DNA of 64,000 nt from Ramazzottius varieornatus. Its lineage: Eukaryota > Animalia > Tardigrada. Made by a program: the position numbers and the translations under genes. The notes under the pieces were generated by a model, which did not search any database, was not told where the DNA came from, and saw only the letters and a list, made by a program, of their open reading frames with translations. Of the stretch, positions 33,109-42,700 are shown piece by piece. The stretch covers positions 893,620 through 957,619 of the forward strand of contig BDGG01000004.1 of the NCBI GenBank assembly GCA_001949185.1. Reading direction: 5' to 3'. Each line of letters opens with the position of its first letter. The stretch's first letter is position 1.

Positions 33109-36100
33109 ATGGCAGCAGACGGAGTCCCGACTACCACGCCGGTCCCAAGAACCGAACTGGAGGAAATCCAGCTTAACATCAACCAGAAAGCTGACGAGGT
33201 ACGTGTGCTGATTCATGATCTATTTTAGTGGCATTGAGATAGAACCGAAATCAAACAAACCCTTATGTCCAACTTGTTAAAAACACAATAGCAGCACCAC
33301 CTCTGTTGTGGCGAATGCGTCACTTGCAAGCCACCGGAAATCGATCGTACGACAGCCTTGAAACGTTACGTGTGGAAGTTTGGTTCAGAAGATGGCGTCT
33401 CAGTGAGTTGAATCCTTCTTGAGCCTCACCGTCAGGTTGAAAGTATCTGATCGCCTCCTCTTGGTTCAGCTGAGTGCACACAACGAAAGGAGGGACTGGG
33501 GAAGAGAGGCGTGAAGGTGAGACTGTATTAACAGCAATTCTGCGACAAGGTAGTGACGTCATCGCGCACTTTTAAACATGTTAATGTCTAACAGTGGGTT
33601 TATGCGGCGCGATAACTGTGGCTGACTAGACTTGCTCACTGGATCAGGCAGAGGATCCTCTGATACATCCGCCGTATTCAAAGTTCTCACAGAAGCTGAG
33701 TGCGGTTTCGGAGTTTCTGGAGAACTTGACTGAACGACTTCACTAGTCTACGAGTAGATTTTCCCACATAACGACGCAATTAAGACACGCCTGAGAGACC
33801 GGAGACGCCGGCGAAAGTAGAGGGTTGTTCCCTTCTAATCTCTGGAGCTGTCGAGCCTCGAGTTCATAGGATGCCGCGCTCAGCTCGCTAGGAATCATAA
33901 ACGCAAAGCATGCGAGGAAAGTGAGTTTCCGTCCAGTCATCCTGTATCCGGATCCCAGGCCGTATCGATCTTCGAACGCTCCAGCCGACCCCAGACATGC
34001 CTAGACATCGAGACTGACACGTCAGATGCGAATGCGAAACTAAATATGACGTGTAACGACACCGACCTTGGATGGCTCTTAAGCATTTTGGAGATTGTGG
34101 GAGATTGAGACTTCGCTTCCGGGTTGGGCTAGTGAATTCGGTACGTCGAACTCCCAGGGTATGCAGAAACGTACAGCTATGGCTCTTTTAATTTGTCACG
34201 CATACCACAGCGCCTGTAGTCTGTACCATAGTCAAGCTTGATTCAGAGGGGAAGTTAGTCGAGCTCTGTACTATAGCAGCCTGCCGGCAGGGGAGGGCTA
34301 TTTTCTCATCGTTATGCAAAGTACTGGTCCCAGTGCAATTGTCCTTTTTATCCTAGCCGCTCACTAAAGACCTCCAGCTGTAGTAGCGAGGCTGGAGTCC
34401 CGGTTGGTGATCGCTTGATTTGATACACCCGACCACCAACAGGGACTCACTCCACTCTAGCTGACTAATCTCCAACGTAGGCACGCTTTTGTACAACGTA
34501 CAAGGTCCGCAGAGAAGACATCCCGGTCTGCAACTCCATCACAGATGGGCTTTGTGGATTGCTGACACTTGTTTTGAATGTTCCACGATAGTTGACGAAA
34601 TCTAAATTGCTTTTCTCCCCACTCTGCATCTCTCTCTCTCCCTCTTCTCTTCTGAACCACCCAACTGTACCGGCGCAGTATTTACTAGCGGCAATCATCT
34701 GCTTTATCTAGCGCACTTAATTCATCCTGTACTTCCGACATTGCATCTCGTTTCCTTTCACCAAGGCATGCAGAACGGATCCCAACGACAGACATATTCT
34801 GCCTAACATCATATTATACCAGAAGCCTTATCTTTCGCCTGCACGATGGGTCTTGGGAACGCGCGAATATATCTAGAGTGAACTTATATGATACGGTTAG
34901 CTTGAACAAAAAAATGCCTACGGCGGAATCTGTGCGAAATGGCCACGGGACGGGTGGGAAACCCGGGAGCAGAGAACCAGTCGATCTGAAAACCTTGGAC
35001 CTGAATCTTCGAGGGGAGAAAGATGAGTTACAAGTCGAAGAACTGCCCAGGAGGCCTAGTTGGGAAGTCCAGATCGATGATGCGGTGTACGAGGTATCTT
35101 GTGTGAATACGCAACAGAGGAAGAACCCAAGAGCTAGTGAAACTCCAGTGACAAGGAGAAACAAGACGTTCACCTTTCTTCTGGAGTCCAACTTTTCGTC
35201 GTTTCTTCCACGAAACCAAAATAATTCTGCTAAACGGGGCACGAAGAGCGATATCAAATTTTCGTCAAGTTGAGCGTGATATCATGATAGCACACGTGCA
35301 GGTTAAGCTGCTGGTACGCGGTGTTAGGTGTGCAGCTTGCAAGTAAAGCTTGTCACATCAGCAGTCGTTTTGTTTGATTGAAATGACATGTGATCCACAT
35401 GAGCAAACTCATATCCAAAAGGACGTTCGTAGCAGGAACTATCATGTTTATCGATCAGGACAAAACGCTAAACTATGCTTTTGTTTTCATAGTCCCTGGA
35501 CGCAACACGGAGGATGCTCGCCATGTGTGAAGAGGTAAGTAACGTGTTCCTCTTTCTGTACAGAGTAGCTCCAGGAAACCAACATTACACTAAAGCTGTC
35601 ATGATCAGGAGCTTCAGGAGATGGTGAGACCACTCAACAAACTCACCTTTCCCTACGCTTTTAGGGGTTCCACATTTCCTATCATTGTCACGGCGAAAGC
35701 GAGTAACATATGGCGTGAGCAAGGTTATTGGAAGTTGTTGCGTCGTAAAAGGTCGTTAAAATGATCGTTCTGCTGCCTGTGATCAAGTACCGCGTGCTGA
35801 CATGTACTTTATACCTATCAACTCAAAAGGTCAAATCCACAAAGCACACTCAAACATTTTTTAGCGCACGTCACATCAGCTAACTCGAAGCCAGACCAAT
35901 GCTTCCAGTACCGTTAAAACAAACAATACAGTCGTAAATTCGATTATCTGGTGAAACATCCAAAGTTCCATCTGGGACCTCGCATAATGCGCTCTTTGCC
36001 TCTTTCAATTAATATCGATCGAAAGCTCGCTCAAGATGATGGAACTCAAAGTTGGGCGGTAACACGAAAAAAGCACTGACTTGTACCTGATCAGTAAGAA

Positions 36101-37248
36101 TATGGAGTTCTCCAGTGTCTGGTAAGGTACACCAACTTTTGGACGAAAGCGAGGTGTCGGCTACTTTTCAGTATATCAGTGCGAAGCTACTTTGGATGGA
36201 GTCGTCCGCATATCACACTTACCACTCCCTATCTTCATCTAGAGCAAAGATGCTGGTATCCGGACGCTGGTTATGTTGGACGAGCAAGGCGGTAAGTGAC
36301 AAGGACCTTATTCTCCAGACGTTGAACTTGATTGATCCTTTCGAAGTGGGACTAACTCTTGTGAATTTGCTGTCGTTGAAAGTCAATTGAGCGAGAAGTC
36401 TCTTGCCGTTGAGAATATAATTATGCAATTGTACAGAGCAACTGGATCGTATTGAGGAGGGGATGGATCAGATTAATCAAGATATGAAGGAAGCCGAGAA
36501 GAACTTGATTGGCATGGACAAATGCTGCGGCTTATGCGTTTGCCCTTGGAACAAGTATACGCCCTGCTGGTCTCCCACTCGAATTGCAAATATCCTAATG
36601 ACAATTTCTTGTGGTATCCCACAGAGGAAAGAATTTCGAAAAAGGGGCGGATTACGACAAGACGTGGAAAGCAACCGACGACGGCAAAGTCTCGTCGAAC
36701 CAGCCGCGTATGGTGGTCGGTGATGGGAACGGCATGGGCCCTACAGGCGGCTACATCACAAAGTACGGTATAAAATTTAATATTTCCATGAAAAAGTTTA
36801 CATAATCAAAGACTACAATCATCTTTTCGAATTCCTGGTTTTTGCTGGTTTTAAGTTCTCCCTCTGTGTCGCATGATTCACGAGGCACTTGCGCATGTGG
36901 AAATGTGCTTGTCGTTCTTGCATGTGCCTTCTCTCACTCCACCGATTGATTGTTTGTGGTCGGCAGGATCACAAATGACTCTCGTGAAACGGAAATGGAG
37001 GAAAACTTGGGCCAAGTGTCCAGCATGATTACAAACCTGCGTAATATGGCAGGTTAGTGATGCTCACCAAACTTCCGGCAGCTAGAACGGAGTGTCAGTA
37101 ACATTGGGTTTCGGTCTCTGCAGTCGATATGGGTGGAGAAATTGAGACGCAGAATAGTCAAATCAGCCGTATTGGAGACAAGGCCGCTTCCAATCAAGGT
37201 CGGATTGATGAGGCCAACAAAAAAGCCGACAAACTTCTCAAGAAATAA
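33109..37248 (+). CDS. SNAP25: SNAP-25 Qbc-SNARE, isoform using terminal cassette A
   Basis: Shared exons 33109-33198 (MAADG...[17 protein letters not shown]), 35493-35534 ([14 protein letters not shown]), 36243-36291 ([16 protein letters not shown]), 36437-36554 ([40 protein letters not shown]), 36625-36762 (linker). Cassette A = 36967-37052 + 37124-37248 ([14 protein letters not shown]...[12 protein letters not shown]). Confidence 0.95.
34914..35093 (+). CDS. SNAP25: Candidate alternative first coding exon of SNAP-25
   Basis: AAAAATG start, 60 open codons ending ...[10 protein letters not shown], then a phase-0 GAG|GTATCT donor matching the phase-0 acceptor of exon 35493. Confidence 0.5.
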
Positions 37249-37772
37249 CCCTGTTTATCTTCTCCATGACATGCATGTAAATTTTCCCTTCGTTCAATCC
37301 ACTCTTAATTTTGTCGGAGACTTCACATGCTCGATGTTTTTCGGCGAATGGACCTAAGCATGATCTATGTGACTTCCGCTCTTCCTGGTAGACTAACGCT
37401 TGCGCATCCTTCTCTACGCATGTTACCTATTTTTGGTGCTGCTTTCTGTGAAACCAATACGATTCGCGGTCACTTAGCAATCATACCAGTATATCAAATA
37501 CAAATGAGGCAGTTTCGGTATTGCACACACTACCACAATAAGGATTTCCGAAACGGCGGCCCGGTTAACGCTTATCTCGCCAAGTTTTCGCTGTTCGCTG
37601 ATATCGTCTACCACACGATCCCCCGCCACCTTGTGTCATAATCACCGTCCGCGTTGTTACCGTTGCCGCCCCCGGAAACCTCTCTCGGCAATTTTCATTA
37701 GAGCCTTCTGAATTTCGAATGTGGTAAAGCGTTTGGTCCAACTACAGATTGACTGTGCAGTGTATCGTCTAG

Positions 37773-37989
37773 GATCACGAACGATTCTCGCGAGGACGAG
37801 ATGAAAGATAACCTGTGCCAAGTGTCAACCATGATTGGCAATTTGAGGCAAATGGCGGTGGACATGGGTACAGAAATTGGTTCCCAAAACGACCAGCTCG
37901 ATCGGGTTATCCTCAAGGGCGAATCCAACGCAACTCGCATCGTGGAAGCCAATAGAAAAGCCGACAAACTTCTGGTCAAGGCCTCATGA
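37773..37989 (+). CDS. SNAP25: SNAP-25 alternative terminal cassette B (single intronless exon, second SNARE motif)
   Basis: CTAG|G acceptor in the same phase as cassette A; encodes [71 protein letters not shown]. Confidence 0.85.
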
Positions 37990-38425
37990 TCGAGCCTATC
38001 TCCGTTTCTCTCGATCGCCATGATGATGCGTTTCGGCTTTTGCTTGCCCTCTAGCTCCCAATCCAGAACCATGGCCATCCCTTTTAACATTTTTATGAAA
38101 CCGCTCCGATACATACGAACATGCTTTCCCAAGCGCGACGAATTGTTTCGCTCGCAGAAAGTTTCTGTAACTTAGCCAGCCTAAGTCGTAGCTGCGTCTT
38201 GTCTGCTTTCGTCCAGTGCCGATTAGCAACCTGTACTATAGCCTTTTCAAGTCAGAAGACCCACTTCACACAGTGAACCTAAAGATACCCCAAATTGTGA
38301 AACCTTCATCTCTCATGTAACAGTGTTGCCGATCAGAGTCGGCTCAAAAGAGCTCTCAGAGTCGGCCGGATTCAGCTCAAAAATGCGTTGATTTCTACTG
38401 AACAGTTCTTTGGATTTTGTTTTAG

Positions 38426-38700
38426 GATAACGAACGACGACAGAGAAAATGAAATGGAGGACAACCTCTGTCAGGTGTCGACGATGGTTACCAATCTTCG
38501 GAACATGGCGTAGGTTATGCGTTCCGTTAAAGCTTTGATTCAAACAAAAGTTTAAGATTCACTTTGTTAGGTGCGACATGGGTGGAGAACTGGACACACA
38601 AGTGAAACAAATTGAACGCCTTGGCCACAAGGGAGAGTCCAACGCCACGAGAGTAACCGAAGCCAACAAAAAGGCCGACAAGCTCATCGCGAAGGCCTGA
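38426..38700 (+). CDS. SNAP25: SNAP-25 alternative terminal cassette C (exons 38426-38509 and 38571-38700)
   Basis: TTTTAG|G acceptor in the same phase; encodes [28 protein letters not shown]|[42 protein letters not shown] using a GTAGGT...TTAG intron. Confidence 0.82.
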
Positions 38701-39147
38701 AACAGGTTGCCGTGATCACGGCCGGTATTCGCTTCCCGAAAATTCAAGGATTCTATCTGCCGGAGTGGTCGACTGGAAGGATCAACGATGACAATACATT
38801 GATAGTTGCACGCTTACCACGTAACCTAATGCTTTGAATCGGTTGTGTAAGTTGGGACTTTGTAAAGCTCTTCGGTTTTTCTTTTAGTTCGCTTTTGAAC
38901 ACCTAGGTTCGGTCTTGATCTCTCATTAACCAGTCGCAAAACTTACCCAATTCTGCTTCACACGTGCACACGGTACTTGATGTCGTCGAAAAAAATTGGT
39001 ACTGCAGTTCGCCACATTAACATTAAATATTCCCTCAGACAGGCACACCAATAAAATCTGCTGTCTTGCTGCTGGTCCGCGGGTACAGGCCATGAGAAAA
39101 CCGCATTGCGGAGTTCGACATACAGTGTAGGCAAATAAGGTACTCTA

Positions 39148-39197
39148 NNNNNNNNNNNNNNNNNNNNNNNNNNNNNNNNNNNNNNNNNNNNNNNNNN
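39148..39197. other. Assembly gap (50 N)
   Basis: Run of 50 N. Confidence 0.99.
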
Positions 39198-39547
39198 AGC
39201 TTGATCAGCTGTTTGCTTTCTGCGTCACGTCGATTTTGGCCTTGCCCCCTTTCAGAGTACCTTATTTGCCTACACTGTATCACTGTCTTTCTTACCGTAT
39301 ACGGATATGGACCGCAAAATTTCCCAGCGAACGTCAGAAGGGTTCCAGTCATATGAGTGTAATTACAGCTGCTTACAGCGTATTGCGATTGTCAGAGCTG
39401 AAAGGTCATTGTTGCCAAGTATTGCGAGAAACCATTGGTCAAGCTCTGAGACGCCGGCAAAATCTTCTGGAGTACCTAACAATGTAAATAGCGAACTCAT
39501 GTTTTGAATCAAAGAATCAACGGTACATATAGCGAGGTTGTCAGTTG

Positions 39548-39602
39548 TGACGTCATAGTACTGCTTTTGCACAGCGGGAATCGCAGTGATGCTGTGACGT
39601 CA
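39548..39602. promoter_or_regulatory. Tandem CRE/ATF palindromes upstream of macoilin
   Basis: TGACGTCA at 39548-39555 and 39595-39602, about 190-240 bp upstream of the macoilin ATG. Confidence 0.5.
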
Positions 39603-39787
39603 GCGCATTGTGTGGGCAACTGAGGGAAACGGTGGATTGATTTGTATTGATTAGTGTTGATTGGCACAGTCCGTTTGTTTGTATGATCTTCGTTGCAGAT
39701 TTTCTTCTTGTCTTCTGGTATCCATCCTCAGTGTACTTCTTACTTTATTGCTCTTCAACAACAGGACCATCCTAGTGTTGGCGAAAG

Positions 39788-42700
39788 ATGAAACGTCGTA
39801 ACGCTGAAGTAACTAAAAATCGCAAGTGTCCTAAACGATCGAAATACGGCGAAGGATCACTCGGTGTTAGGTAAGTGGACAACGTGACGCATTCTGTTGC
39901 AGCCATAACCCGTGTGACTGCGCCACTGGAGTTGGGTGTTTGGCCTTGTGTTCAACCTGCATGCTGGCTCCTTCCCGCATCTTCTTCCCGACATAATTGG
40001 ATTGTGGATAGCAGGAAGAATGTCTGGTAATACAACGGAACGAAGAAGGAGGATGAAAAAGAATGTCTGGCCTTGTTCTTTGTGTTGATGGCCGTTGTTG
40101 CCTCTACTGGTTTCGACGTTGGTGCGCCACGACAACATAGGGATAAATCACACAGCCGATATTCCCCTACGCTAATCGATCGATAAATCTATCATCCCCG
40201 TTCCTCCGTTCCTAATGGAATTTGTGCTGACTAAGCTTGGCCGGCTTGCTTGCAACGTGAAACCTGGATCGAAAAAGGATTGTTGGCTCGTTTTCACCAT
40301 GCACCTTTGCTCCGTTCGCTGTGTTCTCATTTCGTAATTGCCTGATTCGTGATTGACATCCTTCAGCACTAATTGCTCTCCCTTCCTCTCGGGGTCGGAA
40401 TCCAGTTCATTGGAAGCCAACTATGTCCAGAAGACTGCGGGAAAGGGCCAGAACACTCAAGATACCCAACAAACTGCTGGCAGAACGGTGTGTCAATAAC
40501 GATGGTTCTCCGTTTCTTTGCAGCATCTTCATGGCTGGAAAACTGCTGATCATGTGGATGGTTATTGTTGCCCTGGACTTCGCCTGTGGATTTCGTCTGG
40601 AATATTTTTGGCCCGTCTGGCTCATGCTACAGAGTGTCGCGGATGCCTACAAGTACCAAGGCATCGTAAGTCCTTCTACATGATATTTTCCCGGAATGTT
40701 CCCCCGTATCACAGCACACGGCACGGCCTTGACCATTGCCGGCACAGCCTTGTTCGTCACCCTCGGCACGTCTCTTACCAACGTGCTTATCTTCTTTTTT
40801 CAGGGCTTCACGGTATTTTTTATCAGTATGGTAGTGACGTCGGACATTCTTGTCTACATGTTCGTCCCGACATCCTTCATGTTCTTCTTAGCCAGTCTTT
40901 ACGTCTGGATACAGTACGTGGAAGTTTCCTGTTTACGTACTCGGGTCAGCTTTTGAAACAGTTGTGATCTGTTTTGCGGTTGTTTGCAGGTTGATGATGG
41001 TGTCGGGGATAGAACGAGGTGTATGTCTACAAAACGCGATTATATGGATGGTCTTCCTGTATCTGGAAGCCACCATGAGGTGGCGAGATATCAAAGGCGA
41101 TACCAGCTCGAGTAGTTCGCCCAACTCCAGCACAACCTCCAGTTCCTCGTTTAATTGGGACATCTGTAGGCCGTTTGCAGCACACTGGTGTGTATTTGAT
41201 AACTATCGGTGTTGTAAGAGGGATTAATTTGAAGGTTACAGGATGTTAAACTGGTTCAGGTCGTGGTTTTTTATACGTAGTAAGCTCATTGTTGGTTGTG
41301 CTTTTGCAGTATGGGCTATCCACTGGTGACGCTAAGCTTTAGCATAAAGTCATTTGTGGGCTACAAATATCGCAAGGTGAGTGGCATGTGATGGCAAAGT
41401 GGTTGTAGTTGTGGTCATTAAAACAAACATGAAGGTGAATGGCGAATGCTTTCCCCTCTGTTGCAGCACAAACAGTTGCAGATCGCAACGGAAAATCGCC
41501 TCTTCAGAGATCTCATAAACGACGCGCTACCGGAGGAGAATCGCCGGCCTGTGCCCGAACCGCTTCTTCCTCTCGAAATAACTAAAAGTAAGCCGAAAGA
41601 AAGATTCTTTGTCAGACTAGATGTATTATTTTCCGAGGCAATGGATAAAAAGCAATGATCCTGCATATGTATTCTGCCCTTTTGATACGAGAGCGTCTGA
41701 CAGTTTCAGGGCCGTGCTCTGCACCAACTTGACAGAAATTGCGCAGAAAAACGGCAAAATAATTCAGCGCTCGGAATGCATAACTATACAGCCCGGACGT
41801 TTATCGTCCTGTGCAAAATTTGTGTTCGTTGCAGATGGAATAACAGTGGGTGGAAAAGTCTTATCGACAGATTCGCCCACGGTCTTATCCAACGGCTTCT
41901 TGGCAGTGCCGGTCAATCCCGCGCCGTCAGAACTGCCGAACGGTACCGGTCCGTCATCCTCGTCCTCCTCGAGCAGGAGGGCGATGTTGGTGCAGCAGCC
42001 GACGTCGCAGCCCTCTTCGGACACGTCCAACAACGTCTCGCGGCACTCGCAAAAGTCTCAGCGGAAGTCGTTACGGTTGTTGGGCGACATGCTGTCGACC
42101 ATCACGACGCTTCCTCTGGCCAAGCCGTGTGTCGTGACGGACGACCTGTCGTCAGGCTCGTCGGCGTCCTCGTCTGCTTCCTCAGTGGTCGACGCCCAGG
42201 ATCTCTTTATCAATAGCAGCTCATTAAGCAAGAAGAATTTTAACCTGGAAATGGATAATTGTGATGGCGATTCGGTGGAATCGGAGAAGGTCTTTAGGTT
42301 CAAAGACAGCCATAATCGGTCCAGTTCCAAGTCTAACAGATCACTCTCACCCCGAGCTCCGCAGGGAAGCCACAACACGCTTCAGACCTACGAGAAGGAA
42401 AGTGTCAGTGGCAATCTGGCGACTACGACCACTGCGGGCAGTAGTCGGAATGGCAATGTGGGCAAGAAGGCTCAAAAAGAAAGCATTGGCGACGGCGTGG
42501 CGTCTAAACCGGAACAAGACAGTTTATACTAGTAAGATCGAAACATTCCGAAATTCTTGAAAACTAATCAGTTCTAACCTATCTGAGATGTTTCGTGTTG
42601 GAAAAAATTGGGAAATGGGAATTTGTATAATGCTGCAGATGGGAGCTCGGCAAACAAACTCGGTTAGATCGTTGTTTCAAGTGACGCACGTTTGCAGTAC

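Follow-up and report, generated by a model that had tools for sequence, protein, structure and literature searches.

Can a single gene exchange an entire SNARE helix by alternative splicing? Two of the four helices in the synaptic fusion complex come from SNAP-25, and the second of these carries the C-terminal layers that drive final zippering as well as the surfaces engaged by synaptotagmin, complexin and clostridial neurotoxins. The known natural diversity of this second helix is a matter of paralogues or, in crustacean and barnacle gene models, of its last ~22 residues. The question is raised here by a 64,000-nucleotide stretch of the genome of the tardigrade Ramazzottius varieornatus (hereafter the window, in which all coordinates are given), whose 33.1–39.1 kb region on the plus strand is a neuronal-type SNAP-25 (Qbc-SNARE) gene. 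In this gene the segment encoding the second (Qc) SNARE helix is present in three tandem, diverged copies, which we call cassettes A, B and C, with acceptors (AG/GAT, the slash marking the cut) at 36967, 37773 and 38426. We consider it probable that this one gene swaps the whole second helix by splicing one donor to the three cassettes, giving three versions of the protein.

Splicing was read from four public runs (X1, X2, X7 and X13) belonging to four studies under one organism label, whose Logan contigs were aligned to positions 34000–39140; the runs were chosen from a search in which 27–52% of the words of 36200–38750 were present. The cassettes and the terminal 3′ untranslated region (3′UTR) are laid out as follows.

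36967..37052, plus strand: cassette A exon 1, 28 residues (joint 36762 to 36967 in X1, X2, X7 and X13; translation).
37124..37248, plus strand: cassette A exon 2, coding (...ADKLLKK), with stop TAA at 37246–37248 (joint 37052 to 37124 in 4/4 runs).
37773..37989, plus strand: cassette B, one uninterrupted exon (...ADKLLVKAS), with stop TGA at 37987–37989 (joint 36762 to 37773 in X1 and X2).
38426..38509, plus strand: cassette C exon 1, 28 residues (joint 36762 to 38426 in X1, X7 and X13; translation).
38571..38700, plus strand: cassette C exon 2, coding (-CDMGGELDTQ...ADKLIAKA), with stop TGA at 38698–38700 (joint 38509 to 38571 in 4/4 runs).
38701..39067, plus strand: terminal 3′UTR with AATAAA at 39050–39055 (contigs ending at 39032, 39045 and 39067; hexamer scan).

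A first-pass annotation of this DNA had placed a shared phase-2 donor, ACAAA/GTACGG, at 36762/36763 opposite three acceptors, and both the donor and an AG/GAT at each of 36967, 37773 and 38426 are there in the sequence. Translation likewise agrees with it that every cassette opens K-ITND and encodes a complete ~70-residue SNAP-25 C-terminal SNARE motif with a stop of its own. Its claim that the cassettes run unbroken to their stops holds for B and has to be given up for A and C, which are interrupted by introns of 71 nucleotides (37053–37123) and 61 nucleotides (38510–38570), both spliced out in 4/4 runs; an unspliced reading would end A after ...NMAG and C after ...NMA. These two introns follow ...NLRNMA, in phase 1 in A (GCA G/TC) and in phase 2 in C (GC/G TGC), 2 nucleotides apart on the aligned codons, and B has no intron. 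The locus is a clear example of tandem-duplicated terminal cassettes with loss of the intron (B) and what seems to be a 2-nucleotide intron shift between A and C.

The three copies have diverged far from one another. At the protein level A and B are identical at 46/69 positions (66.7%, matching the two-thirds estimated at first pass), A and C at 68.1% and B and C at 67.1%, and the cassettes share 65% of their DNA and 39–48% of their third codon positions. DNA similarity begins exactly at the acceptor AG and covers coding sequence only (families D1–D3). A tblastn search of the 64-kb window found no fourth cassette and, in keeping with the first-pass annotation, no N-terminal SNAP-25 exons between the cassettes. 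The arrangement resembles a cluster of mutually exclusive exons in that the cassettes are homologous, share an entry phase and carry their own stops, with the first included cassette alone being translated; it departs from like-length internal exons flanked by constitutive exons in that the cassettes are terminal, comprise two, one and two exons, and have no shared coding exon downstream of them.

All introns of the shared part of the gene are removed with GT..AG ends in 4/4 runs. The shared donor at 36762 is joined, again GT..AG, to A in 4/4 runs, to B in 2/4 and to C in 3/4, such that each of the junctions foreseen at first pass (36762 to 36967, to 37773 and to 38426) is present as a spliced contig in public data; in X7 a contig moreover starts exactly at 37773, the acceptor of B. 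The contigs retain 24 or 27 letters upstream of the joint (X1: 24 for A, 24 for B and 27 for C; X7 and X13: 27 for A and 27 for C). The exons of A and B share the prefix GATCAC (6 letters), and C shares only GAT (3), and the flank length equals 31 minus (shared prefix plus 1), as expected of k=31 unitigs that end at a branch point; competition between A and B should leave 24 letters, and a joint to C, or a choice between A and C alone, should leave 27. The flanks thus fit de Bruijn branch points, which indicates that alternative joints co-occur within one run.

Contig depths were summed as well. As depth is a single figure per contig the sums are rough only, but the depths of A, B and C add up to 13.8 + 13.1 + 61.5 = 88.4 in X1 (87 on the shared exons), to 14.1 + 3.7 + 35.4 = 53.2 in X13 (50.4) and to 20.9 + 16.2 + 45.2 = 82.3 in X7 (86.4). 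On this rough measure C appears to be the main form and A and B minor ones. Contigs of X13 are at least 99% like the window and those of X1, X2 and X7 are 95–99% like it; the latter three come from a diverged strain or sibling that carries the same label, and all three cassettes are retained and spliced there.

How does one donor serve three ends? The first-pass annotation had invoked alternative last-exon choice. Its central element, a whole second SNARE motif swapped by splicing, stands, but the contigs point to a competition among acceptors. A hexamer scan of 37240–40500 finds a sole AATAAA, at 39050, 3′ of C, and contigs carrying C exon 2 end at 39032–39067. One X2 contig consists of 24 letters of exon 5 followed by 37773–38509 and then by 38571–39032, which means that B-joined RNA reads through the B–C spacer and C exon 1, splices the C intron and uses the site after C; B transcripts therefore appear to use the poly(A) site 3′ of C. 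The contig with the A joint extends through the A–B spacer to 37792 in X1 and to 37781 in X2. Contigs of A exon 2 end at 37479 (X13) and 37528 (X7), close to an AATACA at 37497, and A may have a poly(A) site of its own near 37500; RNA ends are not visible in contigs, and the 3′UTR of A extends to at least 37479–37528. In X1 the intron at 35548–36235 has a depth of 0 and the inter-cassette spacers a depth of 13–14, which places the spacers in mature RNA rather than in precursor. The description that fits best is of three acceptors in competition for a single donor, not of three classical last exons. In the scheme we propose, a second-helix segment triplicated in tandem downstream of the shared exons would be entered from the single donor at 36762, spliced to one of 36967, 37773 and 38426; the first included cassette would set the C-terminus through its own stop, and any later cassettes would become 3′UTR.

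A candidate for the control of this choice lies around the first cassette.

36871..37422, plus strand: cluster of seven GCATG (RBFOX-type) motifs around cassette A (motif scan).

Three of these motifs are in the upstream intron, one is in A exon 1 and three are in the A 3′UTR, and none lies around B or C. Against a window-wide density of 0.9 per kb, the Poisson probability of at least seven in 0.55 kb is ~1e-6, and the cluster fits a putative RBFOX-type control of the A acceptor. The docking-site/selector RNA pairing of insect exclusive exons was also sought, and only short or imperfect inverted repeats were found; the best of them (20 nucleotides at 80%, 36854–36873 / 38572–38591) was not taken as evidence of pairing.

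Would all three cassettes make a working SNARE helix? Over 67 residues cassette B lines up gap-free with the SNAP-25 chains in solved SNARE complexes (HMMER; 1l4a, E = 3e-23; also 6ip1 and 1sfc). Pfam gave no family match on the five cassette pieces; it holds no model matching the second helix, so this null result is not evidence against homology. In each cassette all 16 core layers are either retained or conservatively substituted, reading from −7 to +8 L, V, I/V, L, A, M, I/L, Q, I/L, I/V/L, A/G, N, I/V, A, A, L, with the zero-layer Gln in all three and the other 15 layers hydrophobic or small. From this conservation of layers each cassette would be expected to enter a four-helix bundle with syntaxin-1 and synaptobrevin.

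To compare the helix surfaces we numbered the cassettes by the human protein (cassette position + 136 = human residue), using the structure alignment and the human SNAP-25 sequence. The equivalents of T138, D166, E170, R180 and S187 are invariant across the cassettes, as the first-pass annotation had recognized for T138, S187 and the zero-layer Gln. In mammals D166 and E170 contact synaptotagmin, and surface positions of the type of D172, D179, D186 and D193 matter for synaptotagmin or complexin action. The equivalents of these last four differ, being E/G/D at D172, S/D/E at D179, A/E/E at D186 and D/V/T at D193. The differences among cassettes fall mainly on the surface of the helix, some of them at positions whose mammalian counterparts are turned toward synaptotagmin, complexin or the C-terminal end of the bundle.

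The copies are also of considerable age. Between cassettes dN is 0.24–0.28 and dS is saturated (NG86 fails; maximum-likelihood dS is 3–29), at which level omega is not estimable, and we use dN and a qualitative conclusion instead. The reading frames, splice sites and 16 layer residues are intact in all cassettes; a neutral copy would not hold frame, splice sites and layers over such a distance, which argues for purifying selection. By this comparison the triplication is old and has been maintained under long-term purifying selection.

Related copies occur elsewhere. In trees of the 70-residue region A, B and C group with five open reading frames (ORFs) from other public samples (P0001, P0275, P0279, P0298 and P0299), apart from the SNAP-25 of arthropods, nematodes, molluscs, flatworms and vertebrates, with support of 89/86 (40 rows) and 93/97 (18 rows). 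The A-like P0299 is 78% identical to A. The B-like P0275 and P0279 are 76–80% identical to B (76% for P0275), lack introns as B does and form with it a B-type clade (89/91), and SQNDQLDR and KLLVK are among the cassette-specific residues that recur in P0275. The C-like P0298 is 79% identical to C and has MAC and RLGHKG in common with it. P0300 (375 residues), listed in the same ORF cluster, is an unrelated membrane protein and was set aside.

Two details of these ORFs may be recorded alongside. P0279 (B-like) and P0298 (C-like) each have a longest contig of 2707 nucleotides, which hints that the two lie on one contig. P0298 and P0299 are identical in their first 19 residues (MEDNIGQVSTMISNLRNMA) and then diverge; to judge from these translations, the A- and C-type ends of that organism may share their first cassette exon, or may have been homogenized by gene conversion.

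Several points weigh against three working isoforms of a single gene. The runs are only presumed to be RNA and are represented by contigs, not reads, which give no usage levels, ends or strand, and the isoforms are known at the RNA-contig level alone; the upstream side of every joint is shorter than 31 letters, below the length we take as bridging a junction; and the trees do not recover A with P0299, or C with P0298, as sister pairs, the comparison having been made with separate ORFs of A-, B- and C-like type and not with loci. A rival reading would make the triplication or the joints artefactual, whether through assembly collapse or expansion, through graph chimeras of similar cassettes or because three separate genes are involved. 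We regard this as highly improbable: the joint flanks are indeed short (24–27 letters), the data are de Bruijn contigs and an assembly gap (39148–39197) lies 450 nucleotides downstream, but cassettes only 65% identical in DNA cannot be merged by k=31 graphs, the flank lengths match branch points exactly, the order A–spacer–B–spacer–C is reproduced both by same-strain contigs (X13, at least 99%) and by the diverged strain, and neither N-terminal exons nor start sites lie between the cassettes. Other doubts concern B in particular. Its joint is seen in 2/4 runs only, both of the diverged strain, and its contig depth in X13 is 3.7. It has no poly(A) signal of its own, no AATAAA lying between B and C, and the B-joined X2 contig passes through C exon 1 and splices the C intron; the B stop is therefore followed by a long 3′UTR with a spliced intron and stands ~520 nucleotides upstream of a spliced junction, so that the mRNA could be a decay target. 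Among the strain coding differences listed, three in B are non-synonymous and one is synonymous, compared with two synonymous and no non-synonymous in the shared exons, one synonymous and one non-synonymous (E to D) in A, and none of either kind in C; B may be the least constrained cassette at present. It could be that only C, and perhaps A, works and that B serves as a “poison” cassette, weakly used, decaying or regulatory, with unproductive transcripts that are likely targets of nonsense-mediated decay. This we think quite unlikely, as the frame of B is intact despite synonymous sites saturated against A and C, B keeps the 16 layers with the zero-layer Gln, other samples contain an intronless B-type ORF, 76–80% identical, that clusters with B (89/91), and in X2 the B contig is deeper (33.5) than that of A (20.2). 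To our knowledge, moreover, the exon-junction rule for decay has not been established for tardigrades.

Three translated cassettes need not be three functions. They may be interchangeable, the duplication having been kept for regulation (through 3′UTRs, splicing control by cell type or stage, or dosage) and not for fusion properties. The core layers that are the same or conservatively replaced in all three, the invariant equivalents of D166 and E170, the dense GCATG cluster around A only and the different 3′UTR that comes with each cassette choice all suit this explanation. We nevertheless hold it unlikely, since one third of the residues differ, cassette-specific residues recur in the best matches from other samples, and differences fall at the equivalents of D172, D179, D186 and D193. 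Small changes can suffice: in 2005 Nagy and colleagues reportedly found that the difference between SNAP-25a and SNAP-25b alters secretion. Mammalian SNAP-25a and SNAP-25b differ by just 9 residues, yet secretion is altered (PMC2581893). We accordingly favor the reading in which one SNAP-25 gene swaps its whole second helix among three cassettes. All three versions would then be translated, and they could form fusion complexes with different regulation or kinetics in different cells. A more far-reaching form of this reading, to which we give somewhat less than an even chance, is a conserved tardigrade system in which three functionally distinct Qc helices would serve different neurons, secretory cells or life stages, including entry into and exit from desiccation, under the control of splicing (e.g., through the GCATG/RBFOX sites around A).

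What do the three cassettes share? The first SNARE helix, the palmitoylated Cys cluster and the linker are encoded upstream of the cassettes by five coding exons that all three forms share, with exon 1 in two alternative versions. Exons 2 to 5 were located by tblastn with the SNAP-25 proteins of other animals and by reading of the DNA.

33109..33198, plus strand: exon 1a, the canonical first coding exon (MAADG...LNINQKADE), with donor GAG/GTACGT (the loose end of an X2 contig before exon 2 matches 33167–33196 with 1 mismatch).
34914..35093, plus strand: exon 1b, an alternative first coding exon of 60 residues (MPTAESV...DDAVYE) (frame open from the ATG at 34914).
35493..35534, plus strand: exon 2, 14 residues, part of the first SNARE motif (tblastn with SNAP-25 references; RNA-contig joints).
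36243..36291, plus strand: exon 3, 16 residues (joints 35534 to 36243 and 36291 to 36437 in 4/4 runs).
36437..36554, plus strand: exon 4, 40 residues, the end of the first SNARE motif and the palmitoylation Cys cluster (KCCGLCVCP) (tblastn; joints).
36625..36762, plus strand: exon 5, the linker, ending in the shared phase-2 donor ACAAA/GTACGG (Pfam; joint 36554 to 36625 in 4/4 runs).

Exons 1a to 4 align to the SNAP-25 of other animals as an N-terminal Qb SNARE helix followed by the Cys cluster for palmitoylation, and exon 5 matches the Pfam SNAP-25 family (PF00835) with 50 bits (cut-off 25; E = 3.3e-13). Products that begin with exon 1a are 215, 216 and 217 residues long; residues 1–146 are common to them, and about one third of the last ~70 residues differ. 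Exon 1b together with its 5′UTR starts at or before 34448 (contigs cover 34448–35091), and its joint to exon 2, 35091 to 35491 (with the cut moved by +2, 35093 to 35493), is found in X1, X7 and X13 at ~1/6 of the shared-exon depth. The N-terminus encoded by exon 1b is unrelated to that of 1a and takes the place of the start of the first SNARE helix. X2 alone contains a contig in which exon 2 is joined to an acceptor at ~35663 (window 35532 to 35663) and which then continues unspliced to 36270, probably a minor or aberrant splice, or precursor RNA; every intron has depth in this run and in no other.

Two further observations concern the surroundings of the gene and its family. Just 3′ of the gene a perfect 27-nucleotide inverted repeat (39120–39146 / 39254–39280) brackets a run of N (39148–39197), and X7 contains an “opposite strands” joint from 38952 to 38993; the two could reflect a true palindrome, or else an artefact of the assembly or of the contigs. 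Another contig carries a second gene of the SNAP-25 family (L002, G000:C3:618215-621424; ORFs 584–1210 and 1207–1713). It is compact, with apparently two coding exons, and has a long Gly/Ser-rich N-terminus, the same Cys cluster and one second SNARE motif, which is 53% identical to cassette B; it is probably a non-neuronal SNAP-25 paralogue.

How, then, does the arrangement compare with known ways of diversifying SNAREs? In the syntaxin-3A/3B pair and other SNARE splice forms, alternative exons replace part of the SNARE motif and produce cell-type-specific fusion machinery; syntaxin-3 belongs to another SNARE family, and its two forms exchange a partial motif together with the membrane anchor. 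The paralogues SNAP-23, SNAP-24, SNAP-29 and SNAP-47 likewise provide alternative Qbc/Qc helices for different fusion reactions, but they change both helices, the linker and the promoter together, whereas here helix 1, linker and promoter are shared and only helix 2 changes. Vertebrate SNAP-25a and SNAP-25b arise from mutually exclusive exons 5a and 5b, which lie in helix 1 (PMC2581893). As in the tardigrade gene, a SNARE-motif segment is tandemly duplicated within a single SNAP-25 gene and one copy enters each transcript; but the vertebrate copies are two internal exons of equal length, covering the end of the first helix and the Cys cluster and differing at 9 residues, whereas the tardigrade has three terminal cassettes of two, one and two exons that encode the entire second helix with their own stops and differ at ~1/3 of 70 residues.

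The arthropods, the sister group of tardigrades, offer a further comparison. A search with a crustacean SNAP-25 led to many NCBI isoform models (Procambarus, Cherax, Amphibalanus, Petrolisthes; insects), which are gene-model predictions and were aligned within species; the proteins that display the isoforms include P0157–P0177, P0162/P0173 and P0215/P0225/P0246. Insect, mayfly and decapod models have a 3-way mutually exclusive 16-residue exon in helix 1 (SKEAGIRTLVALDDQG / SQDAGAKTLYMLGEQG / a third type). Exon 3 of the tardigrade gene is homologous to it and single, and no second, arthropod-style copy of exon 3 was found in its flanking introns. In decapod and barnacle models the last ~22 residues of the Qc helix, beginning at about layer +3/+4, are exchanged through an alternative last exon, so that these animals swap only the last third of the helix, at an ancient intron after ...RINxK. 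The tardigrade gene, by contrast, swaps the whole helix from the ITND boundary, lacks the ancient intron and offers no alternative exon in helix 1. None of the proteins retrieved showed a whole-helix swap.

Neither a tardigrade SNAP-25 nor alternative second SNARE motifs were found described in the literature searched, outside which most subscription journals lie, and no published description was found of the arthropod helix-1 exclusive exon or helix-2 alternative last exon. The first-pass opinion that the arrangement is undescribed therefore survives in that no paper was found, and has to be narrowed in that decapod and barnacle models already swap the last ~22 residues. That SNAP-25 genes splice tandem-duplicated SNARE-coding segments was known already; the novelty lies in a complete Qc helix, in three copies, at the 3′ end of the gene.

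The gene thus keeps three complete versions of helix 2 on one promoter and one first helix, in an animal whose nervous system has only a few hundred neurons. Functional differences among the isoforms, should they exist, would make them natural chimeras in which the part played by the helix-2 surface in release probability and kinetics is separated out, and would reveal how release machinery is diversified in a very small nervous system. Should the conserved system of distinct helices prove true, it would be the first natural swap of a whole SNARE motif by splicing, and it would offer ready-made variants for understanding the role of the helix-2 surface.

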